Made by a program: the position numbers and the translations under genes. The notes below the pieces were generated by a model, which saw only the letters and a program-made list of their open reading frames with translations, was not told the origin of the DNA and made no database searches. Source: Octopus sinensis (taxonomy: Eukaryota). From it: a DNA stretch of 64,000 nt. The DNA lies in NCBI RefSeq assembly GCF_006345805.1, contig NC_043024.1, positions 12,152,001 to 12,216,000 on the forward strand, in the 5' to 3' direction. Shown piece after piece: positions 4,234 through 61,259 of this stretch (position 1 is its first letter; the number at the start of each line of letters is the position of its first letter).

Positions 4234-4341
4234 CTTTCTTTGAAATGTTCTTCTATACAATTCAAATCAGTGATGGAATTACCAAAAGGATTCCTGGGTT
4301 TGCCTTCAATCATATATTCGGTATATTCTGGAGACCATTCA
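4234..4341 (-). CDS. GCLC: GCLC-like gene B, coding exon 3 (EWSPEYTEYMIEGKPRNPFGNSITDLNCIEEHFKER)
   Basis: Matches GCLC WxPEYxxYMIEGxP motif; AG/GT boundaries; 108 nt, phase 2-2, same size as gene A exon 3. Confidence 0.9.
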
Positions 4342-5338
4342 CTTTAATATTTTTTTTTTAATGAGGAATTACATTTATTAAACTAGATAGCAGAAAATTT
4401 TCAAAAAATTAATTACAATGTTTTAATTGTTTTGGTTGGGGAGAAAGGTTATTCAAATTACAATTTTAAATAATTTGACTAAAAATTTAATTAATTATAA
4501 AACTTCTGATAATCTCACTCACACTATGCTTCTCAATCGCATACATACATACAGATAGATATACATTATCCAATGTGTTCTTTTTTCTCTCAAATAGATT
4601 AAAGAGTAATGTGAAGGTGAATTGGTAGTCAAAATGCTTAAGCCAACTTGCAGCAAGAATTTATCCCACTCAACTTCCGCTATGGAACGTGATGGCAATA
4701 ACAATGGCTGCAGGAAATTACACCACTCACAGCTCCTGTCCTTGCAGACACAAACATCTCATGCATCTCACACATGATTCAACTGCTAATATCACATCAC
4801 TTTTCTATCATCAGAGCTGCCATAATTCTATAATTACAGCTATGTGATTGCATCAGTCATTAAGCTAACAGTTGACGGGGTTTGAACTCACAATGTAACT
4901 TTTATTACCCCTGTCAGTTACGACGATGAGGGTTCCAATCAATCCGATCAACAGAACAGCATGCTCATGAAATTAATGTGTAAGTGGCTGAGCACTCCAC
5001 AGACATGCATAGCCTTAGTGTAGTTTGCAGGGAGATTCAGCGTGACACAGAATTTTAAAAGGCAGTCTTTTGAAATACACATACAATACATTTTTGCCAG
5101 CTGAGTGGACTGGAGCAATGTAAAATAAAGTGTCTTGCTCAAGGACACAACATACCACTGGGAATGGAACTCATGAGACAGAAAAGAGAAACAAGTTCTA
5201 CTAATGGAAACTAAAGCACACATCTATCTCTTACTTCCTTTCACTTTTTCTCTTCTTTCTCTCCCCAAATTCTTGTTTATTAATGACTTTAATTATCACC
5301 CAAAATTATGTAAAATTTGTTCACTTAATTACACTCAC

Positions 5339-5445
5339 CTTGATTCAATTGCTTTTACTTCAGAAGATTCAAGTAAAGTTGTAGAAGTCAAAAGTAACTG
5401 GACAATTCGTTTTTCATGGTCAAATTGTAACATTGTATATTCGAT
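5339..5445 (-). CDS. GCLC: GCLC-like gene B, coding exon 2 (IEYTMLQFDHEKRIVQLLLTSTTLLESSEVKAIES)
   Basis: Matches GCLC VEYMLVxFDHExKxVxL; ttttttag acceptor, gtgagt donor; 107 nt, phase 0-2. Confidence 0.9.
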
Positions 5446-6628
5446 CTAAAAAAAAGTCAGAATAGTTATTTATGAGAATCATATAAATAACAGAAACAGA
5501 TGTTAACAAAATAATAAACAGCACATTGTCATCTTTGTATTCTGATATGAGCTATTTTCCTTTGATTCTATTATTTCAGTTTAAAAAAATTTTGTACTCC
5601 CATCAAGATGGTAAGGAACCAGAAATAAAAGAGGCCCCAAGAAACTCCTTAGTTTGTAGTGAATTTCAAAAGTAAAGGGGACAAAATATTTAATGAGAAA
5701 CTGCTCTAAAAATTATGAATGATTAATACAAGATTTAAAAGAATTTCCTTAGATTTTATTCTTTAAGTTTTAATAATTTTCTTTAGAATTTACTCTCAAC
5801 AAAATGACAAAGGAACCAAAATTAAAACAAGCCCCAAGCAACACCTTAGTTTGTTGTGAATTCCAAAAGAAAATGGGATAAAATGAGAAACTGTTCTAAA
5901 ATTCATAATTCTTAATCAATACAAGATTTAAAAGAATTGAGATTAAATCCAGGGTCATTTTAGTGGCATTATTAACATCTAAGCAAATCAATACCCTGGA
6001 CCCTATAGGATTTATTTATTGACAGAAAACAACGGCATTCATAGATCAGAAATGGGGCATGAGACCCATAAGTAACTCAGGGGCAAATATCTAGTATGCT
6101 CATACCTGCATATGACATTAGTTATATCTGTCAGGGAATGAAGAAGATAGGGTGTTCCATATAAAATATGTTTGAGGAAAGAAATTATTAGAGTAGAAAT
6201 TCCAATGAGAATGCGGGACAACAGTGAAAGAATGAGAATGAATAGAAAAATGAGTCCCTTGATTAGGGATCTTAACAATGTGAGAAATTCACTGTAGGAC
6301 ATCATGAAGGAGAGAAAGAACATTAGCAGAGGCACCAACCCAGATGCGGTAACAGTATTACATAAGAAACTTATAAAGATGAAAAATATCCATCTATTCA
6401 TCCATCTATTTCTGACAAGCTTCTTTCAGTTTCCATTTCCCAAATCCAACTGTTGAACAACCCGAGGCTTTTGTAAAAGACACAGTGCTGCACTGTAGGA
6501 GTAGAAAGAAATCTTCTTAACCACACAGCTACACATATGCTTATTGATGTTGATTAAAAACAATCATGTGCATTTGCTTCATTGATTTAAACTCTCCTTT
6601 CAATCTTTGCCTGTTTCTTCTATCACAC

Positions 6629-7725
6629 GTGACACACGGGATGTATTTCCCTGGGGCTCTTGCATCATATATTATAAACATTCCTATTTTTCTTTTCAAC
6701 CATGAAAGTAACTTGGGACCTATGAAACAAAAGCATTATACTAGCTCTGGTTGTATAAAACAAGGGTTAACTAAATAGCTGAAAACAAGCATGGACTTTT
6801 AGGGCTAACATATGAAAATGCTTTGGAGTGGTAAAAAGTTAAGGGGTGCAACAGTGACCAGATGGTGTGGATTTCGATTTTACTGGTCAGCCCCAAATCC
6901 AACCACAATTGTTTTTAATCCTTGTGTGATACACAGGACATATTTCTCTGGTCTTTGTACATCACATATGATGCACAAGATAAATGCTTCTCAACCACCA
7001 AAGTAACTTAGGACTTATGAAAACTTTACATTACTCAACATATGAAACAGGGGTTAACTAAAAGCTTGAAAAAAAATGGACGTTTCAGACAAACTTATGA
7101 AAATGCTTTGGATAGGAAAAGGGTTAGGAGGTACAACAGTGATCTGAGGGCATGGTTTCCATTCTTACTGGTTGATCCAGAATCCAACCATGATCATTTT
7201 TAACCCTTTTCCTATGCTGTATATCACATGTTATACACAAGATATATTTCCCTGGTATCTATGCATCACATCTGATACACCTTCCAAATTTTTTCAACAA
7301 CCAGAGTAACTTGGGACTTAAGAAATAAAAGCTTTTTATTACTCAGAATGTATGAAACAAAAAGTTAACTAAAAATCTGAAAACAAGGATGGGCGTTTAG
7401 GATAAAGTTATGAAGATGGTTTGGACAGGCAAAATGTTAAGACACACACAAAACACGTTTACATATGCTCAAGAATTTAGTAAAATATCTCTAGTTATTT
7501 GGTTATCTATTGGGGTTATCTAGTTATTTGCCTGTCCTGTGTATCAACGTGTGATACACAGGAAATATTTCCTTGGTGTCTATATATCATATATGATACA
7601 CATTCTCAGGTTTTTTTTTTCAACCATCAAAATAACTTGGTATCTATGAAAGGAAAGCTTTATGTTACTTAAAACGTACGAACCAAGGATTAATGAAAAT
7701 GCTTTAGACAATTAAAGGGTTAAGC
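6629..7725. repeat. Four diverged ~200-300-bp related units, possibly piggyBac-like MITE remnants
   Basis: tgtgatacacaggatatatttccctgg...gtaacttgggac...atgaaaatgctttgga...gggttaa recurs at ~6629, 6924, 7230, 7550. Confidence 0.55.
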
Positions 7726-7859
7726 ATTGTTGTAACGAAAGTTCTGTCCATTTTTTAAAGTAAATGTCTTAGATTTATAGGTTTTTAATTTCTTGGTTCT
7801 ATTTGAAATGTAATGAAATCATTAACATATCATTTTCTTTCATTGTCTTCTATCTGATA

Positions 7860-8500
7860 ACAGAATTGAAGTTGTTGTCTTGGCCCCCATGTTTGCTCCA
7901 CGCAAAGAACATATTTGTTACGTTAATCTTAATGGATTTCAAAAAATGAATAATATAAGTGTAGCAGCAAAATCAATCCAAAACTCTGATGCTAATGGCA
8001 TTGTGACTGAAATAGCATGCAGAAGATGGTTGTCAGTATTCAGAAATAGGGACTGCAGCCTGCAAGATGAATTAAGAGAAGGGCTCCCAAGTCGGTTGGA
8101 TCTTGATGCATTGTTGCAGTAAACCCAACTTTTACAGTTTTGAGAACTAAGCACAGCTTCAACATGAGCCATACCTCCACCATTTATCATGAATTGGAAA
8201 GGCTGGGTAAAGTGACAAATGTTGGAAAATGGATCCTACATGATCTCTCCGCAAACAATTGCAAACAACGTGTTGACTGTTGTGCATCATTGTGATCTCA
8301 TGAGCTGCAGATGCATTTTTTTAATAGAGTCATCACTGGAGATGAAAAATGGATGTTTTACCATAATATTAAGCATAAATGTTAATGATTCAGTTGTTGT
8401 GATGAGCTACCTCAGAAACCCAGAAGTGGCCTGCAACCAAGGAAGATTCTTCTGAGTGTATGGTGCAATACATGTGAAATAATTCATAATCAAACAATAA
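7860..8500 (+). mobile_element. Degenerate mariner transposase fragment
   Basis: VTEIACRRWLSVFRNRDCSLQDELREGLPS resembles the mariner HTH (W..RF..GD..L.D..R.GRP); a later segment resembles IVTGDEKW. Confidence 0.7.
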
Positions 8501-9681: not shown

Positions 9682-9831
9682 CTCATCGCCCCAGTAAAAT
9701 GGACAGTTCTTCAGGTCCTTATATTTCTTATACTGATGAACAAACTGCATTCTTGCTTGATTCTTGACATGTGGAATATAGTGTTTAATCTCCTCCCATG
9801 TCATTAGGGTACCATCAGTAAGGAAAACCAT
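9682..9831 (-). CDS. GCLC: GCLC-like gene B, first coding exon (MVFLTDGTLMTWEEIKHYIPHVKNQARMQFVHQYKKYKDLKNCPFYWGDE)
   Basis: Matches GCLC N-terminus (G..LSWEE...HV...G..QF.......WGDE); 150 nt; GT donor at 9681-9680; upstream acceptor ttctatttgcag at 9904 implies a 5' UTR exon. Confidence 0.92.
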
Positions 9832-10599
9832 TTTAAATCTGATTGTTAAACTATGTTTTAAACCAGTTTTTCTTTGATAGACTCTCTTTCTGTTAAGTAA
9901 GAACTGCAAATAGAAATAAAACACAAAGTGAAGGTTTCACGTGCAAGACATTTTGATACAATGTAAATATATAAGCAGACATTGCTTAAATTATTCAATA
10001 TGTCACAAAAATACAAAATACAAAATATTGGTCTTCTTCCAGCTTATTTAAAGCAGGCAAATGTCTTCTACACTAGCTCTGGACCAACCAAAGCTTTTTG
10101 AATGGATTTGGTTGAATGAAACTGAAAGAAACTTGTTGTACACACACACACACACATACATACATGCATATAGATAGATGGATATAGATATACATACATA
10201 GAGAGAGAAGTTATGAGAGGTAATGGTGTAAAACCCAAAGGTGTCAGGTAATGGGCTGACTAAGTGCTATGGATAGACCATAGTTAAGCTCCACATTCGA
10301 TGATTATGCAAATAAGGAGTCCAATGGAGTCATATATCAGCATGTGCATATATAAATATTGTTTTTTCTAGAATGAGATAAAAAAAAACAAGGCTGTGCA
10401 GATTTTAGAACATCTATAAATAGAAGGTCTTGCAGCTGTTTCCAGGATATTTATTAAATCCCTTCATCACAGACAGTGTGAGTAAATTGTTAAGCAATTG
10501 TTAATTTAGATAAGATATGAAATACAGAGTGAAGTGGGGGAATGAAAATAGATATGAAATATGCAGGGATATTGTGTTTGAAGACCCATTATTTAAGCC

Positions 10600-11670
10600 G
10601 AATGATATACATATAAAATTCCAATACCTTGTGAGTAAAATACAATAATATCTAAAATTGGCCATTCCAATGCAAAGTGAAAATATTTGCTGATGACACT
10701 AAACTCCAGCAAATCGTCAATGAAGAAGCAGACCGAACTCAACTCCAGTCTCATCTATATGCTGTGAGTCAATGGGCAGACAGAAACAAAATGCAACTGA
10801 AGGAGGGAAAATTTGAGCTGATGCATTTTGGAAGAAATTCCTCACTAAAACAGCCATACTCTCTTCCTTCAGGGGAACCGCTCACAGCCTCTAACAATAT
10901 TAGAGACCTGGGTGTAATTGTTGATGACAATCTCAGTTGGAGTGCACACATCAACAAGAAGGTCGATATAGCTCATAGGATGAGTTCCTGGATCTTAAGA
11001 ACTTTCCGGTCCAGAGAACAAGGTGTCATCATACCACTTTTCTCCTTCTTTGTACGGCCACACCTCGAATACTGCTGCCCACTCTGGTCTCCCCATACAT
11101 GACAAAACATCTCGAGGATTAAATCACCCCGGAGGGCACTCACTAAACGAATTGAAGGCATGGCTGCTCTCGATTATTGGGATTGCCTTAAAGCCTTGAA
11201 ACTCTACTCTCTCCAGCGTCGCCATGAGCGGTACATCATTTGTACGATGTGGAGAATATACCGCCAACCTTGCCCAAACAACCTGAACATTAGCTTCAAG
11301 GTTCATCCAAGACTGGGACCACGGGCCATACGTCCCCTGCCCAATTCAAGATCACAGTATACATGTACACTGCAACATAATTTCTTTTCCTCAACAGGCC
11401 CTGCCCTATTTAACATTGTCCCGAAAGAGATCAAAGAGGAAAAGGATCCCATAAACTTTAAACGGGGTCTGGATAGATTCCTTCAAGGAATACCAGATAA
11501 GCTACCCATAATTGGATACAACTCACCCAACAAAAACTCACTACTTGAATGGACCATAAACAAAACTTGACTTAAACAGGATTCAAACAATTCTATCGGG
11601 TGGTGCTATTAAGTTAGACATGGCCTGGACCAATCATTGGTCGAACATATCTAAGTTTATCTAAGTTTAT
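10600..11670 (+). mobile_element. 5'-truncated CR1/L2-like LINE, RT C-terminus and 3' tail
   Basis: KIFADDTKL, ELMHFG, IRDLGVIVDDNLSWSAHI, VRPHLEYCCPLWSP, LKLYSLQRR; one TGA at 11100-11102; tandem ctaagtttat tail. Confidence 0.88.
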
Positions 11671-11691
11671 ATGTATATATATATATAATAT

Positions 11692-11723
<32 letters not shown>

Positions 11724-11729
11724 GATATG

Positions 11730-11764
<35 letters not shown>

Positions 11765-11784
11765 ATGTATATATATACATATAG

Positions 11785-11881
<97 letters not shown>

Positions 11882-11892
11882 GTATATATATC

Positions 11893-11950
<58 letters not shown>

Positions 11951-12199
11951 TATATATGTATTATATATATATATATATATATGTATAATATATATGTATA
12001 TATATATATATATATAGTCTATATATATATATATATGTATATATATGATATTATATATGTATGTATATATATATAATGTATATATATATATATGTATGTA
12101 TATATATAATATGTATATATATATATTATATGTATTATATATGTATAATATATATATATATGTATGTATACTATATATGTATGTATAATATATATATGT

Positions 12200-12247
<48 letters not shown>

Positions 12248-12280
12248 TATGTATTATATATATATAATATATATATATAT
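11670..12280. repeat. Long compound (TA)n microsatellite
   Basis: Directly visible; produces spurious YIYI ORFs. Confidence 0.95.
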
Positions 12281-12341
12281 AAAACATTATTGGTGAATTG
12301 AAGAAATGGAGCTGAACGCAGATTGAACAGAAATCGTTTTA

Positions 12342-12431
12342 TTTCATTCTACACGTGTTTCGAAAGGCACAAATTACCAAAATCCGATTGAATAATGGGA
12401 CCATATTGTGTCTTTCTCTTCAGGAAGAAAA
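12342..12431 (-). ncRNA. Type I hammerhead ribozyme in inverted pLTR
   Basis: Minus strand TTTTCTTC-CTGAAGA-GAAAGACACAA...TTGTGCCTTTC-GAAAC-ACGT-GTA-GAATGAAA: core intact, stems I-III, GUA cleavage triplet. Confidence 0.8.
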
Positions 12432-14046
12432 AAGGAAATCCGTTGGAAAAACAAAAACAGAACAGAGGCGGAGCAAAAAACAATATGCTTGTTTAGACAA
12501 GCCATCGCCAATAACTTCCCCAGAAATTCCAAATATTACTCCACGGTTAACTCACATAAAGTTAGGATAGCTTTCTCCAACACTAAAAACCTCGCCCAGA
12601 TAATCGCCTCCCATAATAATAGGCTACTTACTAAGACCCTATCACCTTTTTCCGGAGGCACAGCCTCTTCCGCTCCCGGTTTAATGCCCAGTAGGAATAA
12701 TTATAGTAGTAATAATGATATGAGAGCCAGTACAGTGACACATAATCTCAGCTCCAGCCAGGGAGTACCCACTAGGGGTTTAGTTATAAAAAGGGGTGTT
12801 GTGGTTGACGGTAACAATGGGAGTAGGGTAGAGAGCCCCATTAGCATCCCCAGCATCATTTCCCGCAATAGCAGTACCACGGGCAGTAGCAATGACAGCA
12901 CTCTGATAGATAGTGGAGAATCAGGGGTTATTCCTATAGTTAATAGTGACGTAGTGGAAAATAGAGTAGTAAGCGGCTGCAGGTCTCGGAACGAATATAG
13001 TGACAGGAACGCAGTTCTAATTTCAGAAACCAATCCTAGCAGATTAAGATTCACGTCGGCGAACTCCAAGATCAAAAACGCCGTCTACCAATGCAAGGTT
13101 TACACGGACTCAGATGCCTTCACTTATGTAGGGGCATCATCCTCAAGATTGTCTTTGCGTGTCTCCAACCATTACGCAACTTTTCGGGACGTGAACAAGC
13201 GCCAGACCACGGGACTCAGTAAGCTAATATGGCGACTGAAGGATGCGAACTTAAGCTATAGGCTGGAATGGTCAATTTTGTCGGTGGCCCTCCCATTTGA
13301 TAGGGGCAGAAGACAGTGCAACCTTTGTGTCTCCGAACTCTTCCATATTTTGTTTGCCAGAGGCCGGATGGTAAACGGGCTCTTACAGTCGGCTTTTCGA
13401 TGCCCCCATTGGCGGCGTTACACTTATCTGGCCTTTAAATAGCGTTTATAAATAATACCGGCACCCATAGCCCTGGTGTAACAAATTCTGAAATAGCCTT
13501 TAAGATATCTACGATTGACCACTGCAAGGGGAATTACTCCTGTAAGACAAACGGGGCTTGGTTTTTTCACAGCGGGGGGTTTCCTTGACAAGGTAGGCTT
13601 AGATGAACACACACACACATAAAACATAATATATATATATAATTTTTTATTTTTTTCTTTCTGCCACCCAACGGTTATCACGGCAGTAGCCACTGACAGC
13701 CGAACGATCAAACGCACACACGTACACAAAAAATGTTTTCTACCCCTACGCCAACACACACATATATAGAACAGTATACACACACACACGTCTCTAAGTA
13801 GATTTTTTCTCGCCTCTTATAAAACATCCAATATTCTTTAAATAGTCAGATCTTTATTCTCGGTCACAAAGAACATCTATACACCCTCACCCACATGATT
13901 GACCGATGCCTGACCCGTTGAATTCTTCAGCCACCGGTTCTCAACATACACTGATAAACAGTTTCGCCATGGGCTCTTAGGAGCACAGTTCGATTTGTTT
14001 TTTGCTCCGCCTCTGTTCTGTTTTTGTTTTTCCAACGGATTTCCTT

Positions 14047-14135
14047 TTTTCTTCCTGAAGAGAAAGACACAATATGGTCCCATTATTCAATCGGATTTTG
14101 GTAATTTGTGCCTTTCGAACACGTGTAGAATGAAA
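14047..14135 (+). ncRNA. Type I hammerhead ribozyme in sense pLTR (GAAA core reads GAA here)
   Basis: Same sequence as 12342-12431 but cgaac instead of cgaaac; followed by aataaa. Confidence 0.65.
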
Positions 14136-14337
14136 TAAAACGATTTCTGTTCAATCTGCGTTCAGCTCCATTTCTTCAATCACCAATAATGTTTTAATTT
14201 CAATTATCCGCACCAACGCACGGTTGCAACGCCAGATGGTTGTACCTCCAACTGTGCTGTTTACTGCTGTGATTTTTGCTACTAAGGTATCGGTTAAACT
14301 GTTGATTAATCTACTACAAGATTATTCATCTCTATTT

Positions 14338-14386
<49 letters not shown>

Positions 14387-14423
14387 GTATGTATATATAT
14401 ATATATATATTGTATTATATATA

Positions 14424-14669
14424 TATATAATATTAATTAGAGACAAAACCACTATTTTGCAAAACAAACAAGGAAAGACTTAATCAATACATAAAATTTT
14501 AATAAAAAATAAAAAAACCGCCACTACAATTGTTTCATGTCCTGATCAGGACATGAAACAATTGTAGTGGCGGTTTTTTTTACTTTTTATTAAAATTTTA
14601 TGTATTGATTAAGTCTTTCCTTGTTTGTTTTTGCAAAATAGTGGTTTTGTCTCTAATTAATATTATATA
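14424..14669. repeat. Near-perfect spacerless palindrome, arms ~122 bp
   Basis: Centre cctga|tcagg at 14545/14546; arms match apart from A/T-run length differences and about one substitution. Confidence 0.95.
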
Positions 14670-14746
14670 ATATTTTACTATAAAATTGGATTTAATCCTA
14701 AATCTGATTTTTTTTCCCTGTAAATTTGGATTTATTCCCTAATATT

Positions 14747-14781
<35 letters not shown>

Positions 14782-14921
14782 TATACATATATATGCATAT
14801 ACATATATATATATATACATTATATATATACATTATATATGTATATGTATATATGAGGAAAAATGAAAACCAAGGCAGAACAAGTATCTCAAGTCATTTA
14901 GAATAATTCAATTAGGTTCTA

Positions 14922-15226
14922 TATTTAAGAGATGAGGAATTGTGTACATTATTTACATTTGACGGATATTTGTCCTCATCCCATGGCATATGGCATAGCG
15001 GTTAGGAGAGCGAGCTTCTAACTTCAAGATCCCGAGTTTAATTCCAAGCATGACCTGAACAATAATAATAATAATAATACTATTGGAAAATACCTTACGA
15101 CTGAGAACCCAGGTTCGAAATTTTCCCAAGAAACCTGATAAAGGTTGGAGGGTATATCAGCCGAAATGTTGTGTTAACAACGAACAAGATGAGGACAAAT
15201 ATCCGTCTGTTGTAAACAATGTAAAT
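14922..15226 (+). mobile_element. tRNA-headed SINE-like element ending in a hammerhead motif, preceded by an inverted copy of its tail (14922-14980)
   Basis: A/B-box-like head 14981-15055, (AAT)n, CTGATAA-AGGTTG..CAGCC-GAAA-TGTTGTGTT at 15130-15175; homologous to 49918-50187. Confidence 0.7.
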
Positions 15227-15289
15227 TCATTTGGGTGAGTTTTAAGTCTTACAGCAGTTTCTGGAAAAACCCAAATGGTTGGTTAACAT

Positions 15290-15720
15290 ATCCATGCAGT
15301 GGGTATTCCGTCATCAGAGACAAGGTATAAATATGTTAGAAAGGGAAAATTTGTGACCGAATGCCCGTTGCAAGCCCACTGCAGAGGATTTAATGTAGTG
15401 TACAAATTCATGGTCCACAATATATGGCATAATTCTATTAACTACTATATCATATCTACTATTAATTTTAAACAGATATATTCTGCACATGTTAACTCAT
15501 TTAAATATGAGGAGCATAGCAAATCTACCTCCCTAGCCAACCATATGCACCATCTAATAAATAGGATACCATACAGGATATCCTGAGCCGTAATAGATAC
15601 TGGGGTCCCATACCAAGGCCAGCAATCCACTTGTGGATTATGCCTAAAAGAAGCCTTCCAAATATTAATACATAATTCACTGCAATTACTAAACTAACAA
15701 AACAATCCTTTTTCTACATG
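15290..15720 (+). mobile_element. Degenerate Naiad-like PLE GIY-YIG fragment
   Basis: CPLQAHC..VVYK...FKQIYSAH..SF....STSLANH, TGA in place of conserved Trp, then PYQGQQSTCGLCLKE. Confidence 0.75.
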
Positions 15721-15924
15721 TTGTCGTAAGTTCTATCACACATTTAAATTCTTCCATAGATCCAAATGCAGACAAAATCAACACGCATGACACATCCATC
15801 CACTGTCGTTACAATATATGTATATATATATAATGCATGTATGTAGGTATATCTAGATGTGCGCATCTTATATCTACCCTTATATGCATATATGTGCGTA
15901 TCTATGAAGGGATTTGTGGTTTGT

Positions 15925-16230
15925 TTGCCTTCCTACTTATTAGGACTTTGGTTTTAGCTAAGTTGACTCTAAGTCCCTTCAATTCTAATTCATGCTTCCA
16001 CACTTGAAACTTCTCCTTTAGTTCTGATAGAGAATCAGCAATTACAGCAAGGGCATCAGCATAGAGGAGCTCCCATGGGCATCCTGTCTTGAATTACTCT
16101 GTTATTGCCTAGAGGACTATGATGAAAAATAGGGGGTTGAGGACTGATCCTTACTGGATGCCTACCTCTACCCGGAATTCTTCACTATACTTGTTGCTAA
16201 CCCTCACCTTACTGACAGCATTCCTGGATA
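15925..16230 (-). mobile_element. RTE RT-core fragment
   Basis: Collinear with 35220-35545 (GCPWELL.ADD region). Confidence 0.8.
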
Positions 16231-16239
16231 TGGCTTGCA

Positions 16240-17235
16240 CACACACACATATAGACATACATATTTATACACATGCATACATATATATATATATATACAC
16301 ATACATGCGTACATATATATACATATATAAATGCATATATATACATAAATATATACATATATGCATACATACATATATATACATATTTACATACATACAC
16401 ATATATATACATATCTACATACATATATATATATATACATATATACATATATATATGTATATACATATATATATATGTATATACATACATATACATGCAT
16501 ATATACATACATACATACATACATATACTCTTTTACCCTTTTACTTGTTTCAGCCATTTGACTGCAGCCATGCTGGAGCACCACCTTTAATCAAGCAAAT
16601 CAACCCCGGACTTATTCTTTGTAAGCCTGGTGCTTATTATGTCAGTCTCTTTTTGCCGAACTATTAAGTTACGGGGACTTAAACACACCAGCATCGGTTG
16701 TCAAGTGATGTTGTGGGGACAAACATAGACACACAAACATATACACACACATTCATATATATATAATATATATATATATACACATACATGCGTACATATA
16801 TATACATATATAAATGCATATATAACATAAATATATACATATATGCATACATACATATATATACATATTTACATACATACACATATATATACATATCTAC
16901 ATACATATATATATATATACATATATACATATATATATGTATATACATATATATATATGTATATACATACATATACATGCATATATACATACATACATAC
17001 ATACATATACTCTTTTACCCTTTTACTTGTTTCAGCCATTTGACTGCAGCCATGCTGGAGCACCACCTTTAATCAAGCAAATCAACCCCGGACTTATTCT
17101 TTGTAAGCCTGGTGCTTATTATGTCAGTCTCTTTTTGCCGAACTATTAAGTTACGGGGACTTAAACACACCAGCATCGGTTGTCAAGTGATGTTGTGGGG
17201 ACAAACATAGACACACAAACATATACACACACATT
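16240..17235. repeat. Two near-identical tandem ~482-bp units (microsatellite plus SINE)
   Basis: atactcttttacccttttacttg... SINE segment at 16523-16740 is repeated at 17005-17222. Confidence 0.9.
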
Positions 17236-17506
17236 CATATATATATATATATATATATATCACAATCAAGGAACGGCCATAATAGGCCATTCACCCACTA
17301 GAAATAACAGCCAAAATAGGCCATTCACCCACTAGAAATAACAGCCAAAATTAAATAGTCATAGACCATTTTTAAGTTCAACATCACAATCAAGGAACGG
17401 CCATAATAGGCCATTCACCCACTAGAAATAACAGCCAAAAGCTTTAACCGTAAAATAACATCAATTCCGTAAACCAGGAGAAAATTAAAAAACATTTACC
17501 CTGTAA

Positions 17507-17611
17507 TTTCTTATACGATACACCGTTTCGTCTACTGTTTAATGGTAAACTAACCTGATTAAATTAAATCAAGCCAATCTACCATAGGCCCTTAGATTCA
17601 TCAGTAAGAAA
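17507..17611 (-). ncRNA. Type I hammerhead ribozyme, array unit 1
   Basis: Minus strand TTTCTTA-CTGATGA-ATCTA...TAGAC-GAA-ACG-GTGTAT-CGT-A-TAAGAAA; 7-bp stem I; predicted cut 17514/17513. Confidence 0.8.
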
Positions 17612-17996
17612 TAGTCAAGTCGGAACAGATATTTTTCACGAGGCATTCCCGTCCCTGCCTCGGCAATATCTGACCTAAAATTTTCAAATCATCGCACTCG
17701 CGCCAAATTTATCGGCAGCAAATAAATATAAGCCGCCGATTCCATTACGGAATTAACCAGAAAATTCATAATTAATCAATATAGGGTGGCAAAAAAATTT
17801 TGTAGAATTTTTTTGCCACCAGCGGCCTAGTGGGAAAAAATTAAATAGTCATAGACCATTTTTAAGTTCAACATCACAATCAAGGAACGGCCATAATAGG
17901 CCATTCACCCACTAGAAATAACAGCCAAAAGCTTTAACCGCAAAATAACATCAATTCCGTAAACCAGGAGAAAATTAAAAAACATTTACCCTGTAA

Positions 17997-18100
17997 TTTC
18001 TTATACGATGCACCGTTTCGTCTACTGTTTAATGGTAAACTAACCTGATTAAATAAATCAAGCCAATCTACCATAGGCCCTTAGATTCATCAGTAAGAAA
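17997..18100 (-). ncRNA. Type I hammerhead ribozyme, array unit 2
   Basis: Same core; stem III loop GTGCAT; predicted cut 18004/18003. Confidence 0.8.
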
Positions 18101-18483
18101 TAGCCAAGTCGGAACAGATATTTTTCACGAGGCATTCCCGTCCCTGCCTCGGCAATATCTGACCTAAAATTTTCAAATCATCGCACTCGCGCCAAATTTA
18201 TCGGCAGCAAATAAATATAAACCGCCGATTCCATTACGGAATTAACCAGAAAATTCATAATTAATCAATATAGGGTGGCAAAAAAATTTTGTAGAATTTT
18301 TTTGCCACCAGCGCCTAGTGGGAAAAAATTAAATAGTCATAGACCATTTTTAAGTTCAACATCACAATCAAGGAACGGCCATAATAGGCCATTCACCCAC
18401 TAGAATAACAGCCAAAAGCTTTAACCGTAAAATAACATCAATTCCGTAAACCAGGAGAAAATTAAAAAACATTTACCCTGTAA

Positions 18484-18587
18484 TTTCTTATACGATGCAC
18501 CGTTTCGTCTACTGTTTAATGGTAAACTAACCTGATTAAATTAATCAAGCCAATCTACCATAGGCCCTTAGATTCATCAGTAAGAAA
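18484..18587 (-). ncRNA. Type I hammerhead ribozyme, array unit 3
   Basis: Same core; predicted cut 18491/18490. Confidence 0.8.
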
Positions 18588-18868
18588 TAGCCAAGTCGGA
18601 ACAGATATTTTTCACGAGGCATTCCCGTCCCTGCCTCGGCAATATCTGACCTAAAATTTTCAAATCATCGCACTCGCGCCAAATTTATCGGCAGCAAATA
18701 AATATAAACCGCCGATTCCATTACGGAATTAACCAGAAAATTCATAATTAATCAATATAGGGTGGCAAAAAAATTTTGTAGAATTTTTTTGCCACCAGCG
18801 GCCTAGTGGGAAAAAATTAAATAGTCATAGACCATTTTTAAGTTCAACATCACAATCAAGGAACGGCC

Positions 18869-18907
<39 letters not shown>

Positions 18908-21624
18908 GACAAGCTTCTTTTAGTTTCTGTCTACCAAATCCACTCACAAGGCTTTGGTCGGCCTGAGGCTATAGTGGAAGGCATTTCCCCAATGTGCTAC
19001 GCAGTGAGACTGAAACCGGAACCATGTGGTTGGTAAGCAAGCTACTTACCACACAGTCATACATACATACATATATACATACATATACATATATACATAC
19101 ATACATACGTATATATACATATATACATACATATGTATATATACATATATACATACGTATATATACATATATACATATATACATAAATATATATATATAC
19201 ATATATACATACATACATACATACATCTATATACATATATATACATACATACGTACATATATATACATGCATACATATATATACATGCATACATATATAT
19301 AAATACATACATATACGTACATACATACATATATACATACATACATATATTTACATGTATACACATACATACATACATATATATATACATATATATACAT
19401 ACATATGTACATACATACATATATCTACATACATACATGCACGTGCATACATACATACATACATATATATGCATGCATGTATGTGTGTGTGAATATGTTT
19501 CTGTTTGTCCCTCATCACTGCTAAACAACTGGTGTTAGTGTGTTTGCGTCCCCTAAACTTAGCAATTTGGCAAAAGAGAACAGTACCAGGCTTTAAAAAT
19601 AAGTTCTGTGGTTGATACATTCAAGTAAGAAATTCTTTAGGCTGGTGCGCGCAGCACGTCTGCAGTCTAATGACTGAAACAAGTAAAGGATAAATGACAT
19701 AAAATATCTGAGTCTAACCCCTAAACAAACAAAGATGTCAATCCTCTTGTTACTAACCTACCTGATATAGACCCATGTTTTAGCATACATAAACCACTTG
19801 TTTTAAAGATTTTGGATCTAAATTCAAAAATTTTCGTTATTATTTCATCAAAGATTTATTCTTTTTTTTAATGCAAATTATGTTTTAAAAAAAGGGCTTC
19901 CTGCCTTGTGTCCTAGAGATTTTTAGGGCCAGTTGTTTGGTTTTCTTGGTGTGTAGGTGATCAAGATCTTAACATTGCCTTCTGAATAACGCCAATCCAT
20001 CACAGTATTATTTATTTACAGCTAAATGGACTAGAGTAGTACAAACCAATGTGTTTTTGCTATGAAAGAAAGTGTTTGGCTTAAGAACACAATTCACCAC
20101 TTAGCCTGAGAATTGAAATTAGGGTCTCATGATGAAGTGTAAAACATCAAAACCCCTAAGCCACGTGCTTTCATCTTAGACATTTCCTTAATAAAGGCAA
20201 CTTATTTGACAAAACTTCCCTCCAAATTTTTCACAAAGTTGCATGGCTCAGTGGTTTGTGAGTTTCATTCCTGGACCGGGCTCTGTGATGTGTTCTTGAT
20301 CAAGACACTTTATTTCACATTACTCCAGTTCAGAGGAATGAGTTGCAATGTCTCTGGTGCCAAGCTATATCAGTCTTTGCCTTTCCCTTAGATAATATCA
20401 GTGGCATGGAGAGAGGAGCCTGGTATGCATGGGTAACTACTGGTCTTCCATAAGCAACCTTGCCAAGACTTGTGCCTTGGAGGGGAACTTTCTAGGTGCA
20501 ATCTCATGGTCATTCATGGGATTGCACCTTGAAAAGGGGTCTTTACTTTTTTATTCTCATTTAGGGTGTATTATAAGATCCAACATCAAGTACTTGACTT
20601 GCAATTTATTTTTATCAATCTCAGGATAAAAGGCTAAACTAACCTCACCAAGATTTGAGCTCAGAATGTAAAGAAATACTACAGGTGTTCTGTGACTGTA
20701 ATAATTTTGTAAGTTTACTGTGTTAATTATTCTACAAATTAATTAAAACACATGGGCAATGTACTTCATTTAGAATTTACTAATATCTCTAAAAGAAATA
20801 AGCCTCAAAAAACAGCCACCAGCGCCTGAAATATTACAGTAATGCCAAACATAATAGTAAGAAGAGCGACACTATAACAGAGGAAGAAAAAGACATCAAC
20901 CAATCAATTCTAATTCATGTCAATCCAAAAATCTGAATTACTATATAATTGAATTAATTATTGTTTAAGACATTAAATCATTTGAAATAAATGTAAATAA
21001 ATAATTCATGAATTTAAATATGCTCACCTCAGATATTCACAGCTTCTTATTTCAGTCACAAGTCTCTGACTGTCACCAATTAAACATTGAAATGTTAGTG
21101 GGTCAGAAGAGAAACAATTCTATCATAGATTCTAAATGTTACTTCAGCCCTGCAGTATCAAATTACTACAAAGAATGAGGTCAGATTTTGAAAAGCAATT
21201 TCTGTTAGTTTTTCCCATGAAAGCCACCCATTAACTAATTTTGGTCTGCAGATAACCAAATCGACACCTGTAATCCGCATATCGTATCAGATTGCTCCAG
21301 TAGAGATGGAAGGAGAGGGAAGTAGTTTTATGCTACAAGATAAGGAGTCAAAGTATGAGAGAAGGGAATAGAGCAGGACTGGTTTCTTGCTGTAAAGAAG
21401 CTACATGGCTAAATTAAATGCATTAGCTAACACAGAGTGGATGAAATGGGGTTATTGATAGAACACACACACACACACACACACAAGTTACGGTTATAGG
21501 ATAGAATATTTAAATATAATCATTATAGGTGGTTTAGTGTGTGTGAAAGAGAGAGAGAGAGATTCTTTTCACATACATTTAGGTTTTACATTGAGTTTAC
21601 CATTCTTCTCCTCCTCCTCCTCAT

Positions 21625-21760
21625 CATCATCATCATTGCTGCTGTCAGTCATCATCATCTTCATTATCATCATTGTCATCATCATCTTCATTATCATCAT
21701 TGTCATCATCATCATATTTATAATTGTTGTTGCTGTTGTCATCATCAACATCATCATACT
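21625..21760. repeat. (CAT)n/(CTC)n imperfect trinucleotide tract
   Basis: Directly visible; yields poly-H/I/M ORFs. Confidence 0.9.
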
Positions 21761-24694: not shown

Positions 24695-24917
24695 TATTGG
24701 GGGTGCTCAAAACTTCCTGGTTTTGGGTGGTGAAAAAAAACAGGATGAATCAGTTAATTATGATTCTATTCAACATATTCCTCTTCTCAGATTCACACAC
24801 TTATTGCTGCGGTCCTTCTGTTATTCTAAGCCCTGTAAAAGTACTCAGAAGGATAGGCTTTCAGCCAGGCCTTTCACAGTACCCTTAAAGCTAGGAACTT
24901 TTCAGCACCCCTTTGTA
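24695..24917. mobile_element. ~210-bp mariner-type MITE; further copies at ~30610-30820, 42670-42880, 56858-57067, 58580-58790, 61920-62105
   Basis: TIR-like ends (ta)cgagggggtgctgaaaagttcctgg / ccaggaacttttcagcacccctcg(ta) with shared internal gatcagttaattatgatt..ttcaacatattc. Confidence 0.8.
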
Positions 24918-25068
24918 TCCTAATAAACCTCCTGTGATGCACTGCATCTTGAGATGTATCAGCACCCCACAACCACCTTTGTCTTCATTCAAGTTTTCCA
25001 TCTACTCAGCCTCATGTGGTTCTGGGTTCATATATATATATACATACATACATATATATATATATATC

Positions 25069-25099
<31 letters not shown>

Positions 25100-25233
25100 G
25101 AAAGAATGGAGTTGAACGAAGATGTTAACAAAATTCATTTACTCTCGACATATGACGTGAATTTGCTACCCAGGTTTCGGTTAAACAAATTTTCCATTCA
25201 ATCGATAAACATAGGATAATTCATTCACCTATT

Positions 25234-25277
<44 letters not shown>

Positions 25278-25508
25278 GTGCATCCAACAAATTTCCCAAG
25301 TTCACAACATTTCCACAATACAAATTCAAAGACAATTCTAGCCAAAATGACTGCATTAGCAAGGAAATACATTTCATGAGAAAATATCGACTGAGTCTAA
25401 ATTCTCTAAACTAGCAACATTGAGACTTTTTTTTTATATGTGTATGTGAATACATATGTATGTGTGTATATATGTGTATTTATGTATGTATATATATATA
25501 CATGTGTG

Positions 25509-25576
<68 letters not shown>

Positions 25577-25674
25577 TATATGGGTATTATGTGCATGTAT
25601 ATATAGTTTGTGTATGTACATGTATGTGTGTATATATATATATATATGAGTGTGCGTATGTATCTGTATCATCA

Positions 25675-27857: not shown

Positions 27858-27863
27858 TTTATT
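27858..27863 (-). other. Candidate polyadenylation signal AATAAA for gene A
   Basis: About 80 nt after the stop codon; position only. Confidence 0.35.
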
Positions 27864-27940
27864 GATTGTAGATATTTGATTATATTTTGTGTGGAAGCCA
27901 AAATTGAACAAAGTTAAGATAAAATCGTTGGAATGCTTCC

Positions 27941-28666: not shown

Positions 28667-28827
28667 CTGTTGATAATAGAATCAAAATAATTGCAAATAG
28701 TTTGAGTTTTCTGTCCCGTAGTTGTTTGAGATTGCCCGACTGGTTATAAAAGTTATTAATATTTTTGGTTGAAAGGACAATTACAAAAATACACAGAGAA
28801 ATGGAAAGAATATTAACATAGGTGCAA

Positions 28828-38262: not shown

Positions 38263-38344
38263 CTTTTTGGACATCTTTTCTGAAGTGAAACTTTTCTTTA
38301 TTAATGGCATCCCGCTTTTGTGCTGATGTGAAGTTTTCATCAAC
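38263..38344 (-). CDS. GCLC: GCLC-like gene A, exon 13 (VDENFTSAQKRDAINKEKFHFRKDVQK)
   Basis: VDENM..AQKRDA....F.FRKD motif; 82 nt, phase 0-1. Confidence 0.93.
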
Positions 38345-41597: not shown

Positions 41598-41702
41598 CTT
41601 TGTTATTGGGATCAAAAGGTTTAGCTTGAGAGTAATTATAGCTCGGTTAAGAAGAATAAGGAATACAACAAGAGCAGCATTTTCAAAGTCAGTCAACTGA
41701 TC
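41598..41702 (-). CDS. GCLC: GCLC-like gene A, exon 12 (DQLTDFENAALVVFLILLNRAIITLKLNLLIPITK)
   Basis: QLTDFEN.A.VVF..LL.R motif; 105 nt, phase 0-0. Confidence 0.95.
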
Positions 41703-42962: not shown

Positions 42963-43049
42963 CTCCATTGTTCTGAATTCCACTTTCCATCCAGATTTCT
43001 CATCAGGGAGCTTCAATTTTAAGCTGTGTCCATTACTATTAAAGATAGC
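42963..43049 (-). CDS. GCLC: GCLC-like gene A, exon 11 (AIFNSNGHSLKLKLPDEKSGWKVEFRTME)
   Basis: GW.VEFR.ME catalytic motif; ccttttag acceptor; 87 nt, phase 0-0. Confidence 0.93.
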
Positions 43050-47293: not shown

Positions 47294-47406
47294 CTGAATA
47301 TGACCAGAATCTTTGAAAATGTCTTGATCAATTTTCTCTTTGCGTAAAATGAGTGGGTCTTTAAGAAGGAGGTGTGCGACATATTTGGCGATTATTTCAT
47401 CAATAC
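47294..47406 (-). CDS. GCLC: GCLC-like gene A, exon 10 (GIDEIIAKYVAHLLLKDPLILRKEKIDQDIFKDSGHIQ)
   Basis: GID...A..VAHL...DP motif; 113 nt, phase 1-0. Confidence 0.93.
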
Positions 47407-49399: not shown

Positions 49400-49538
49400 C
49401 TTCAGCCTTCAGTAATTCATACTGCCTATGGTCATAACGGTAATCATAGTCATTATAGAATTGGTTGTCCACAGAAATGTATCTTCCTATTGAATCAAAA
49501 CCAGTTTTGTCCACCAAAACTTTGCCTTCTGTCAAAGG
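49400..49538 (-). CDS. GCLC: GCLC-like gene A, exon 9 (PLTEGKVLVDKTGFDSIGRYISVDNQFYNDYDYRYDHRQYELLKAE)
   Basis: Aligns to PL......KSRYDSI..Y.S....YND; strong polypyrimidine acceptor; 139 nt, phase 0-1. Confidence 0.92.
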
Positions 49539-50610: not shown

Positions 50611-50727
50611 TTCTATTCCCCGTTCTTGTCTGGTACGATCATCACAAGACCAAGACATGGGTCTCCAAGCGGAATCAAATTCAGATAAAAGTCCTCGATA
50701 AATCGGTGATCCAGCTGTCAGTGCTGT
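50611..50727 (-). CDS. GCLC: GCLC-like gene A, exon 8 (TALTAGSPIYRGLLSEFDSAWRPMSWSCDDRTRQERGIE)
   Basis: ALTA.SP.YRG and DDRT..ERG motifs; 117 nt, phase 0-0. Confidence 0.95.
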
Positions 50728-51376: not shown

Positions 51377-51594
51377 CATAATCGGAGTAAGAGGCACAAA
51401 ATTGTCAAAGAGATAAGCAGCTTCTTTCAGACCAGCAGCTTGAAATGTAACTTGTATAACACAGCAACTGACTCCGAATGATTTAGTATCCATGTAAATG
51501 TGGCCTGGTTTCAATGCTTTCATCATCTCTTCATTGTCTTCATACTCAGACAAATCCTCTCCGTATGGCATCATCGTATTTTTGTCTATATAAA
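51377..51594 (-). CDS. GCLC: GCLC-like gene A, exon 7 (YIDKNT...KPGHIYMDTKSFGVSCCVIQVTFQA...PLTPIM)
   Basis: KP.HIYMD and QVTFQA motifs; 218 nt, phase 1-0. Confidence 0.95.
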
Positions 51595-53559: not shown

Positions 53560-53618
53560 GCGGTACATTGATTACCATTCTTTCTTGTCTTCTTTTAGCT
53601 AAATTTTTATACGAGGTT
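53560..53618 (-). CDS. GCLC: GCLC-like gene A, exon 6 (TSYKNLAKRRQERMVINVP)
   Basis: RR...V.INVP motif; 59 nt, phase 2-1. Confidence 0.92.
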
Positions 53619-54943: not shown

Positions 54944-55060
54944 ATATAGTATGGAGTCTGGGAGCACAGTGCTGCATCTCCTATGAAAACTGATTGGTGA
55001 AGTTCGACTGGATGCTTGTTTGCTTTGTAAGATGGAAAAGTGAAATTAGGACAGCCGAAT
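54944..55060 (-). CDS. GCLC: GCLC-like gene A, exon 5 (FGCPNFTFPSYKANKHPVELHQSVFIGDAALCSQTPYY)
   Basis: GCP.FT.P motif; ttttttcag acceptor, gtgagt donor; 117 nt, phase 2-2. Confidence 0.92.
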
Positions 55061-55805: not shown

Positions 55806-56761
55806 GTGATGGCCAGATAAGATGTTCAAGTTCACTAGAATGTTCCTCGTACCATTCAGTAAAGCTTTAGCGGTGTGAATTGGTACATTATCATCCTGAA
55901 AGATTGTGTTTCCATCTAGAAACAGTTCTGTGAACATAGGATGAATTTGATCTGATAAAATACTTAAATAGTCTTGACTATTAATTCTGCCATGAAGGGA
56001 AACCATTGGGCCGGCAGATTTCCAAGATATAGCCTCCCACCCCCGATCATCACAGATCCTGCTCTATGTTTAACAGTGGGAAGAAGGCAGTCTGGGTCAA
56101 AAGCTTCTTTTGGCTGTCTCCACGCGCATACTTCGCTGGAGGTCGGAAATAAGGTAAAGGATGACTCATCCGAGAAAATAACATTCTTCCACTGCTCTAA
56201 GGACCAATTCTGTAGGGGTTTTTTTTCCACTCTAAATGCTTTGCGACTTTTATTTTTGAAAGTATTGATTTTCTGATTGCAGCTCCTAGCGAACAGTTTT
56301 TATGGAAACTGTGTTCTCTAGATGGTCATTAAGCTCTGCAATAATTTTGAGAGCTGTACTTTTGTGATCCTTTCTAACAATTCATGTAAAAGCCCGATGG
56401 TCCCTATCGAAAAGTTTTGGTTTTCTTCTGGAGTTTTGTTTCGACAAGGAAGTTTTTCCCTCTTTCTCAAAGGCTGTCATTACTTTTGAGACAGTACTTC
56501 TTGAAACACCAACCATTTTGTCTGTTTTCGTTACGCTAGCACCTGCCAATTTCATCTCCTTGAAAGTCCGATAGAGGTGTCATTTTAATGAATTTTAATT
56601 ACCTATTTCTGAGGATATCTGAAAAGAAACAGCAATTTTAGCAAAACATATTAAGCGACGCTATTAATAAATCAAAAAAAAAAAACTAACAAACTTTTGA
56701 CAGTTTTATAGATATTTCAGAATTATGATGCTAGGTGTTTCCATTATTTTGTCCAACCCTG
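55806..56761 (-). mobile_element. Tc1-like transposon, 5' TIR present, 3' end lost next to a SINE
   Basis: WKNVIFSDESSF, PTVKH..GSVM, IFQDDN.PIHT; TIR (ta)cagggttggacaaaataatggaaacacc. Confidence 0.85.
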
Positions 56762-57115: not shown

Positions 57116-57181
57116 CTTGGAAAATATGGCACACTAACTAGAGTTTGGTTTGGGCTGAGAAGTTGTTTAATTGCTTTACGT
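57116..57181 (-). CDS. GCLC: GCLC-like gene A, exon 4 (RKAIKQLLSPNQTLVSVPYFPR)
   Basis: Aligns to RR......L..N......FPR; 66 nt, phase 2-2. Confidence 0.9.
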
Positions 57182-59117: not shown

Positions 59118-59225
59118 CTTTCTTTAAAATGTTCTTCGGTAAGGTTCAAATCTGTGATGGAACTGCCAAATGGGTTTTTTGGTATGCCTTCCAGAATATA
59201 TTCGAGACATTCTGGAACCCATTCG
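59118..59225 (-). CDS. GCLC: GCLC-like gene A, exon 3 (EWVPECLEYILEGIPKNPFGSSITDLNLTEEHFKER)
   Basis: W.PE...Y..EG.P motif; 26/36 identical to gene B exon 3; 108 nt. Confidence 0.92.
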
Positions 59226-61024
59226 CTTTTAATGTATTGTTTTTAAAAAGATAAATTATATTTATCAAGTTAGAAAGCATATAATTTTAAGAATTAATTA
59301 TAGATTTTTTCCAGTTGTTTTTGTTTTGAGTATGATGAAAGAATGTTTAAATTGCAATTTTATATAATTACTAGTAGAGATACTCAGCATTGCTCGGGAT
59401 TAAAATGGCATAGTTTGTATATATATCAGTTATTATATATAGTTTGTATATATATATATGAGTTATGTTGAAACTGGTGATACGGGAAAGTGCAACATTG
59501 ACAACAAAATATTTTGGGAGTAAATGATGGTCTAATTTGACTAAGCGACAAGCAGTAAGTCCCTTTGGAGGATTTCAGGCCTTAACCTATCATGGAAAAC
59601 TGGGAGTAGTGCGGTATGTAATTTTTGAACCCACCAAAAAGTTGTCAGTAGATATACTTGCAAATTTCTTTATAATCATAATCTATGCCGTTTGAAAGGG
59701 ATTTGTATAAATTGTCATTAAAAGACACCCATTTTCCTGAAAGTTATGAGGGGAGAAAGGTTACATCATGTAAATTTTCCGAAACACTTCTCTCCACCCC
59801 CTCGTAAAAATTATTTCCCATCAATCCCTGTATACTCTGAAACCACAACATCTAAGCGGTATTTGTAGAAAATTTTGTTAAAAAGTATCCATTTTTCTGT
59901 ATGAGACAACAAAGTTGGGAGCGTATACATCTGTAGTAAGGCCCTTTTATTTATAAAATTTTTCATTTCATGTTCATTTCATTCATTGTTTGCAATGTTC
60001 TCTCTTCTCGTCTGTCTGTCTGCCTGTCTCTCTCTCTCTCTATCTCTCTCTCTCTCTCACTCACACACACACTCTGCAAAGCTTACAGATGGACTGCTGA
60101 ATTGAAATCTCTATGCTGCTTTGAGGGGAAGGTAAAACTTGATAAACTGCCTCTCCTTCTGTTGTTAGACTACCGTGATGTTTGTTTAAAAAAAAAATTA
60201 TGACTGTGATAAAATAATGAAAGCAGTATTTACTAAGCAAGTGAACACTATTTTACAAAGAAATGATTAGACATAAAATATAAAAATTATTAGAATTGAG
60301 AATCAAATGTGAAAATATTATCAAGGGGATAGCAGAAAACCACCCAGAGGCTGTCTTTCTGCCAGTATAGATAATGAAAATTAATTCTAAAATATATGAT
60401 AATTTCATTCTTGCTGTGTTTCTTTATCACACACACACACACACACACATACACACACAGAATTCTGTCAGTTATGGCAATGAGGGTTCCAGTTGAGCCA
60501 ATCAATTCAAGAGCCAGCTCATGAAATTAACATGCAAGTGGCTGAGTCGATCACAGAAAGTGACAAAGCTGGTCCCTTAAAATATGAATACTACTCAAGC
60601 TTCTATATCACTGGAAGAAAGGGATCCAAACCAAAGAGATTAAACCGAAAATGGTGTAATTGTTCAACCCATGCTCTTGCTTTGATAAATTACAGAAACT
60701 GTCGCATATAAAACAGAGGCTTTCCGTTGGTGCACAAGGCCAGCAATGTTGAGGGAGTGGATTAGTTGATATTGTTGAATCCAGGAATTGACTAGATAAA
60801 TATTTTATTGATCCAAGAGGGACAAAAGGCAAATTTACCATGGAGAGATTTGAACTCACAATGTAACGCTTAGTATAGTATATATAACTATGTGACTAAA
60901 TCAACCACTAAGATGGCATTCAATGTTGAAATCCCTCTAAACATTAAAATCAATGAGTTGAGACAGAAAAGAGAAACAGGTTCCAGTGATGTGAACCAAA
61001 CTACGCATCTGTCTCTTGCCTTCT

Positions 61025-61072
<48 letters not shown>

Positions 61073-61152
61073 AATTATTGTTTATAATAACTTCCATTCA
61101 TCATCAAGGATTAAAGGATTATTGAAAATCAAGTGCACATAATTATACTCAC

Positions 61153-61259
61153 CTTGATTCTAATCCCTTTACTTCAGGAGATTCAAGTAAGGACATGGAA
61201 TTCAACAATAACTGGACAACTTTTTGATCATGGTCAAATTGTATTAATGAAAACTCAAT
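61153..61259 (-). CDS. GCLC: GCLC-like gene A, exon 2 (IEFSLIQFDHDQKVVQLLLNSMSLLESPEVKGLES); exon 1 not found in window
   Basis: 21/35 identical to gene B exon 2; same 107-nt size and phase. Confidence 0.9.

Follow-up and report, generated by a model that had tools for sequence, protein, structure and literature searches.

GCLC catalyzes the rate-limiting step of glutathione synthesis and, to our knowledge, is a single-copy gene in almost all animals. A 64,000-nucleotide stretch of Octopus sinensis DNA (CM016886.1:12,152,001-12,216,000, here called the window) raises the question of what two divergent GCLC-like genes, gene A and gene B, are doing next to each other on the same strand. An earlier note, made from the sequence of the window, had read them as a tandem array of GCLC paralogues from a lineage-specific subfamily, possibly continuing beyond both window ends. 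Our analysis moderately favors the view that A and B are adjacent same-strand members of an octopod-restricted, intron-retaining family of GCLC duplicates, predicted to encode active ligases with altered specificity and/or regulation.

Gene A and gene B in the window

Exons were mapped by tblastn, and splice sites were then resolved manually. All GCLC-like coding exons in the window lie on the minus strand, and a tblastn search with four family proteins detected no further GCLC-like fragments there. The distance from the gene A stop (27941) to the gene B start (9831) is 18,110 bp, in agreement with the value of about 18 kb, on the same strand, given in the earlier note. Exons 2 and 3 of gene A (61153-61259 and 59118-59225, on the minus strand like all exons described below) measure 107 and 108 nt, and exons 2 and 3 of gene B (5339-5445 and 4234-4341) agree with them in size and phase, as the splice boundaries confirm. 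Amino acid identity by direct count is 21/35 (60%) for exon 2 and 27/37 (73%) for exon 3, next to the 60% and 72% estimated before. The motifs ES.EVK..ES and P.NPFG.SITDLN..EEHFKER, which had been noticed as shared, are indeed present in A and B and differ from the canonical GCLC sequences.

The window holds exons 2-16 of gene A. Exon 1 was searched for within the window and not found; it is located about 0.8 kb past base 64000. With either of two copies of exon 15 (see below), exons 2-16 give a 557-codon open reading frame (ORF), with all introns of the GT-AG type. The gene is identical to RefSeq XP_029652703.1 (isoform X1, 607 aa) and XP_029652704.1 (isoform X2).

The part of gene B in the window comprises exon 1 (9682-9831, 150 nt), which starts with the ATG at 9831 and encodes the metal-ligand motif WGDEIEY, and exons 2 and 3, with AG/GT boundaries and phases as in gene A. 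Exons 4-16 belong past the window start, exons 4 and 5 lying 0.8 and 3.4 kb below window base 1. Gene B corresponds to XP_036370466.1, a RefSeq model of 183 aa made of exons 1-5 and a read-through stop. A 100-N scaffold gap is present in intron 5, 1.5 kb after exon 5 and some 5 kb outside the window on that side (CM016886.1 near 12,147,000), and colinearity with O. vulgaris ends at this gap. The O. vulgaris gene B locus is gap-free and comprises all 16 exons, which give a 605-codon ORF with GT-AG at every intron. Exon 14 (65 nt, versus 71 nt in gene A) is the only one that differs in size from its gene A counterpart. The position of the gap and the complete O. vulgaris locus suggest that the apparent truncation of gene B in O. 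sinensis is best explained by the assembly gap.

Two further sequences touch on gene B. The O. bimaculoides gene B model also has 183 aa, with a separate 3' fragment, XP_014784038.1. The O. vulgaris protein QHX41528.1 has a body of the CAI9742054 type and ends in 55 residues that match gene B exon 16 exactly. A transcript-assembly chimera is the probable explanation; if the sequence comes from RNA, the 3' exon of gene B would be transcribed.

Selection on the coding sequences

Ratios of nonsynonymous to synonymous substitution (dN/dS) were calculated by the NG86 method from tblastn matches that were trimmed by a local-identity filter against intron run-in, and a sensitivity series was run. For gene A, the comparison of O. 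sinensis with O. bimaculoides gave a dN/dS of 0.21-0.27 (465-496 codons). For exons 1-5 of gene B, compared between O. vulgaris and O. bimaculoides, it was 0.14-0.16 (172-183 codons), and for the XP_036370436-type paralogue 0.19-0.21 (478-505 codons). All three between-species ratios lay significantly below neutrality (P<=1e-5), and changes of the filter settings left them stable. Between the paralogues A and B, dN/dS was 0.31 at a dS of 0.54 and a protein identity of 71%. A and B are thereby shown to be constrained coding genes under purifying selection.

These results bear on the idea that A, B or both might be pseudogenes, haplotype duplicates or artefacts of the assembly. The short RefSeq model of gene B with a scaffold gap after exon 5 would fit it, as would the duplicated exon 15 of gene A, which brings in a stop if both copies are spliced in. 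However, three species have intact ORFs and splice sites, the between-species dN/dS values of 0.14-0.27 indicate constraint, A and B are too divergent from each other to be haplotypes, and gene B is complete in O. vulgaris. Moreover, the order A-then-B and the orientation are common to the O. sinensis, O. vulgaris and O. bimaculoides assemblies, which excludes the misassembled haplotype that the earlier note had already thought unlikely. We consider this explanation extremely improbable, and effectively excluded.

Along the A-B alignment, dS drops towards the 3' end: it is 0.73 over the first 200 codons and 0.34 over the last 96, perhaps through ancient gene conversion between paralogues at that end or through stronger constraint there. 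Exon 16 also differs very little from its canonical octopus counterpart (TMAQWTRQFV.NHEDYKNDSVVS).

Distribution and origin of the family

Seven GCLC-like loci were found in the O. sinensis RefSeq annotation, all on CM016886.1: gene A, gene B, XP_029652730, XP_036370512, XP_036370436, XP_029652761, and a split gene represented by XP_029652334 and XP_029652562. The five paralogues beyond A and B are at other sites of this chromosome. Assembly gaps have left two of the seven loci truncated or split. O. vulgaris has matching seven loci on one chromosome, four of them consecutive (CAI9741796-99), and its B and A genes are adjacent (CAI9742279 and CAI9742280). The canonical O. sinensis GCLC, XP_029635280.1, is found on another chromosome, a separate record of 164.8 Mb, where the gene spans more than 100 kb.

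The 10 kb upstream of A and the 10 kb downstream of B contain no further copy. The proposed extension beyond both window ends therefore holds for the genes themselves (exon 1 of A, exons 4-16 of B) but not for additional copies in these flanks. Similarly, the description as a tandem array is apt in so far as A and B are adjacent on the same strand, but the array is locally limited to two genes, neither of which is the nearest relative of the other.

In neighbour-joining trees, the GCLC-like proteins formed a clade with 100% bootstrap support, apart from canonical octopus GCLC, on a stem of 0.36-0.39 substitutions per site. The clade contained only Octopus and Argonauta sequences, with the canonical copies elsewhere, in line with the lineage-specific subfamily postulated earlier, and grouped with cephalopod canonical GCLC at 96% bootstrap. 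Neither A nor B is canonical GCLC. The one Argonauta hians member branched as sister to all Octopus members (92-97%). Gene A, XP_029652730 and the CAI9742054 type, being the paralogues with an O. bimaculoides orthologue in the tree, each paired with that orthologue. Orthologue dS between O. sinensis or O. vulgaris and O. bimaculoides was 0.11-0.15. A and B were not sister genes in the tree, and since they are not closest relatives, they are not a recent tandem duplicate.

Gene A has its introns at the same positions as canonical octopus GCLC, and A and B share a 16-exon layout with 15 introns at ancestral positions. The coinciding positions indicate that the family arose by duplication at the DNA level and not by retroposition. 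A processed (retro)pseudogene was also considered as a candidate, and was ruled out by the 15 ancestral introns, the intact ORFs and the dN/dS values of 0.14-0.27.

Family members were seen only in O. sinensis, O. vulgaris, O. bimaculoides and Argonauta hians. A protein search at the 90%-cluster level returned octopod members only. In an exhaustive search at the 50%-cluster level (1.84 billion representatives), the family appeared as one cluster at 1050 bits, and the next was the canonical cluster at 647 bits. A probable decapodiform canonical sequence, 79% identical to octopus GCLC, is present in the collections. They are therefore not blind to other cephalopods, with coverage that is thin. 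Our literature search found no paper describing the GCLC-like expansion or the altered active site.

Fold and active site

Gene A matched the Pfam GCS family (PF03074) with 414 bits (cutoff 25) over profile positions 1-372, and yeast GCL (3IG5) in a phmmer comparison with E=1.3e-77 over residues 10-596, so that the GCLC identity claimed in the earlier note is far beyond chance. Exons 1-3 of gene B gave no PF03074 match, as they are N-terminal of the domain, which is carried by the full-length O. vulgaris product. An AlphaFold model of gene A (predicted local distance difference test, pLDDT, 80; predicted template modeling score, pTM, 0.87) matched 3IG5 in Foldseek with E=1.9e-34 and TMq 0.82. 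The family thus shares with canonical animal GCLC the fold (TM 0.82 to 3IG5), the full-length PF03074 domain, the 16-exon layout, and the Mg2+, ATP and catalytic residues. It is 50-53% identical to the octopus canonical GCLC, compared with 62% between octopus canonical and primate GCLC.

Residues are numbered as in yeast GCL, with roles according to a contact table (Table 3 of PMC5613772). The residues for metal binding, ATP binding and phosphoryl transfer (D49, E50, E52, E96, E103, Q268, K451, E470 and R472) are kept in every full-length paralogue. In gene A, the equivalents of E96 and E103 are found in exon 3. The window exons of gene B show D49, E50, E52, E96 and E103, and the remainder was scored in the O. 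vulgaris orthologue.

Other positions have changed extensively. Among 158-159 columns that are invariant in 21 canonical GCLCs, from cnidarians to vertebrates, 39-49 (25-31%) are altered in the paralogues, with a concentration in the HFENIQSTNWQTMRFKPPPP loop over the cysteine site. W445, which contacts the cysteine carboxylate (PMC5613772), is part of the otherwise invariant STNWQTMRFKPPPP loop, and all paralogues are rebuilt there to (I/F)(G/N)SN(W/G)HSLKLKLPDE. In all members, C266 is replaced by S, A or V and R468 by K; in most, Y362, a contact of the glutamate alpha-carboxylate (PMC5613772), is replaced by F and Q446 by H.

In gene A, exon 7 (51377-51594, 218 nt) contains the CCVIQVTFQ motif with V in place of C266, exon 8 (50611-50727, 117 nt) has A in place of R313 (FDSAW), and exon 9 (49400-49538, 139 nt) has F in place of Y362 (KTGFDS). 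Exon 11 (42963-43049, 87 nt) encodes the remodelled loop AIFNSNGHSLKLKLPDE, with W445 changed to G and Q446 to H, and also GWKVEFR, in which R468 is changed to K and E470 and R472 are kept. The combination of R313A and W445G was found only in gene A and its O. bimaculoides orthologue. Gene B has F at position 362 and keeps R313 and W445, and XP_036370436 keeps Y362, W445, Q446 and R313. According to PMC5613772, the putative R313 equivalent influences glutamate binding in T. brucei Gcs.

Family proteins are also about 42 residues shorter than canonical GCLC, with no C-terminal tail and a 13-residue internal deletion, and have lost the cysteine near human position 553. The tail and this cysteine are linked to GCLC regulation. 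Altogether, the family is set apart from canonical GCLC by a rebuilt cysteine-site loop, changed substrate contacts, shorter proteins, seven copies instead of one, and a distribution that, so far as known, is limited to octopods.

Predicted function

The founding GCLC duplication was followed by a burst of change that spared the residues for Mg2+, ATP and phosphoryl transfer. This burst replaced about a quarter to a third of the invariant residues, rebuilt the cysteine-site loop, removed the C-terminal tail and changed the substrate contacts. An acyl-phosphate would probably still be formed on the conserved metal cluster. The preserved core under purifying selection, together with the rebuilt pocket and the seven copies, points to active ligases with changed specificity or regulation. 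That the family proteins are ATP-dependent carboxylate-amine ligases with altered substrate specificity and/or regulation, and not redundant gamma-glutamylcysteine synthetases, seems to us about an even proposition, leaning slightly towards yes.

The conservation of all metal, ATP and phosphoryl-transfer residues would also be expected of ordinary glutamate-cysteine ligase isozymes that go on producing gamma-glutamylcysteine and differ in tissue use or regulation, for example by independence from the modifier subunit or from glutathione feedback. Purifying selection fits such isozymes too, one paralogue retains all listed substrate contacts except C266, and the lost C-terminal tail and cysteine near human 553, if regulatory, would go well with them. 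What they do not account for is the replacement of so many positions that are invariant from cnidarians to vertebrates, mainly in the HFENIQSTNWQTMRFKPPPP loop, the change of Y362 to F in most members, and the additional absence of R313 and W445 in gene A. Regulation alone also poorly explains seven copies. We therefore regard ordinary isozymes as rather unlikely.

A loss of catalysis was considered as well. S-crystallins are multi-copy lens proteins derived from sigma-class glutathione S-transferase, and catalytically dead GCLC derivatives might similarly have been recruited to a structural, binding or regulatory role. The three substrate-contact residues missing from gene A, the long stem branch and the cephalopod S-crystallin precedent itself would be compatible with such a fate. 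The analogy extends to a cephalopod, multi-copy and partly tandem expansion of a glutathione-pathway enzyme with an altered active site. However, S-crystallins have a different fold, and most are without catalytic residues and activity, whereas the family described here keeps the catalytic core. Pseudoenzymes usually lose catalytic residues, but nine metal, ATP and catalytic residues are unchanged in all full-length members against a background of about 30% change at other invariant positions. Dead derivatives are thus improbable in our estimate.

Returning to active ligases of altered specificity and/or regulation, gene A is the most derived member, and probably the one furthest from glutamate-cysteine ligase. 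Because three residues that contact substrate carboxylates are lost, gene A most likely no longer joins glutamate to cysteine. Without R313, Y362 and W445, it may accept an amine that has no carboxylate. A more far-reaching and only tentative suggestion is that octopods possess private GCL-fold ligases that do not synthesize gamma-glutamylcysteine, and would instead couple glutamate, or an acid related to it, with some other acceptor. If true, octopus would have a pathway to gamma-glutamyl-amide or peptide metabolites that is so far undescribed. For gastropod nervous tissue, papers cited by PMC6454038 and PMC4472778 report ATP-dependent gamma-glutamyl-amine synthetase activities, apparently with no gene named. 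Cephalopod amine catabolism differs from that of gastropods according to the review among these articles, and an amine acceptor is therefore mentioned as a low-probability example only.

Several points weigh against the picture of an octopod-restricted family of altered ligases. The trees are neighbour-joining only, and they divide 64% versus 36% on where the family branches with respect to the probable decapodiform sequence, and likewise on whether the founding duplication preceded or followed the octopod-decapodiform split. The absence of the family from squids, cuttlefish and nautilus depends on the content of the protein collections, with one probable decapodiform canonical sequence there. 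Gene B is not visible in complete form in the O. sinensis assembly, on account of the 100-N gap in intron 5. The functional step is drawn from residues: at least XP_036370436, with its contacts kept, might be a normal GCL, replacements of Y by F and of R by K may be tolerated, and L. donovani R373 is equated with yeast R313 by our own offset mapping, which makes this correspondence a putative one. The genealogical conclusions are secure.

A selectively maintained seven-member offshoot of this kind offers a natural experiment in specificity change of the GCL fold, and the family points to small-molecule or redox chemistry peculiar to octopods, for which no one has yet searched. There is also a practical aspect. 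The loci are machine-annotated as "GCLC" or "GCLC-like", and these labels, together with the broken loci, can mislead octopus expression and antioxidant-marker studies that assume one GCLC gene.

Duplication of exon 15 in gene A

A block of 258 nt, consisting of exon 15 and its splice-site flanks, is duplicated in gene A at 30956-31213 and 28443-28700, 2.5 kb apart. The two blocks are 97.3% identical, and 2 of their 7 differences are amino acid changes. O. bimaculoides has a single copy of exon 15, and the duplicate in gene A is, to judge from this pattern, recent. The upstream copy, exon 15a (31062-31179), and the downstream copy, exon 15b (28549-28666), have the same length (118 nt), the same phase and identical splice-site flanks. 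Splicing in both copies leads to an immediate stop. RefSeq isoform X1 uses 15b, whereas X2 uses 15a and then runs into the intron rather than exon 16. The pair is a candidate for tandem mutually exclusive exons, which it resembles in equal length, phase and one-or-other use in the RefSeq models. It differs from them in being very young, and in that the sole 15a isoform has no splice to exon 16.

A conserved element 3' of exon 15 was suspected and rejected, as intron flanks align between the paralogues at 72-88% for most exons, which is expected at a dS of about 0.5.

Remaining exons, spacer and repeats

The remaining exons of gene A are exon 4 (57116-57181, 66 nt), exon 5 (54944-55060, 117 nt), exon 6 (53560-53618, 59 nt), exon 10 (47294-47406, 113 nt), exon 12 (41598-41702, 105 nt), exon 13 (38263-38344, 82 nt), exon 14 (32096-32166, 71 nt) and exon 16 (27941-28107, 167 nt), the last of which includes the TAA stop codon at 27943-27941. 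Rfam and tRNA scans of the window gave no matches.

There is no GCLC-like fragment in the 18.1-kb spacer between the genes (9832-27940). It holds transposon debris, a 600-bp (TA)n tract at 11668-12281 and two tandem arrays of about 485-bp period, at 16277-17264 and 17347-18874, whose units are 98-99% identical to one another. In the O. vulgaris model CAI9742280.1, exons of gene A are connected to a short ORF that ends in SSYLTERESIKEKLV followed by a stop codon. Its counterpart in the window is at 9861-9905 on the minus strand, 30 nt upstream of the gene B start. This terminal ORF reflects either read-through transcription from A to B or an annotation artefact.

Decayed transposon fragments were detected at 879-1133, 10656-11099 and 7826-8119 on the plus strand, and at 56385-56579 on the minus strand. 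They comprise two weak reverse-transcriptase matches, a Mos1-type helix-turn-helix and another transposase-like helix-turn-helix, all below the Pfam gathering thresholds. Intron 13 of gene A harbors a fairly intact long interspersed nuclear element (LINE) at 34692-37283 on the minus strand, in the same orientation as the gene, with a 445-aa reverse-transcriptase ORF (RVT_1, E=8e-32) and a 329-aa endonuclease ORF. It is adjoined at 33596-34484 by a G+C-rich tandem repeat of about 124 bp, and the LINE and this repeat together account for the G+C peak at 32-36 kb.

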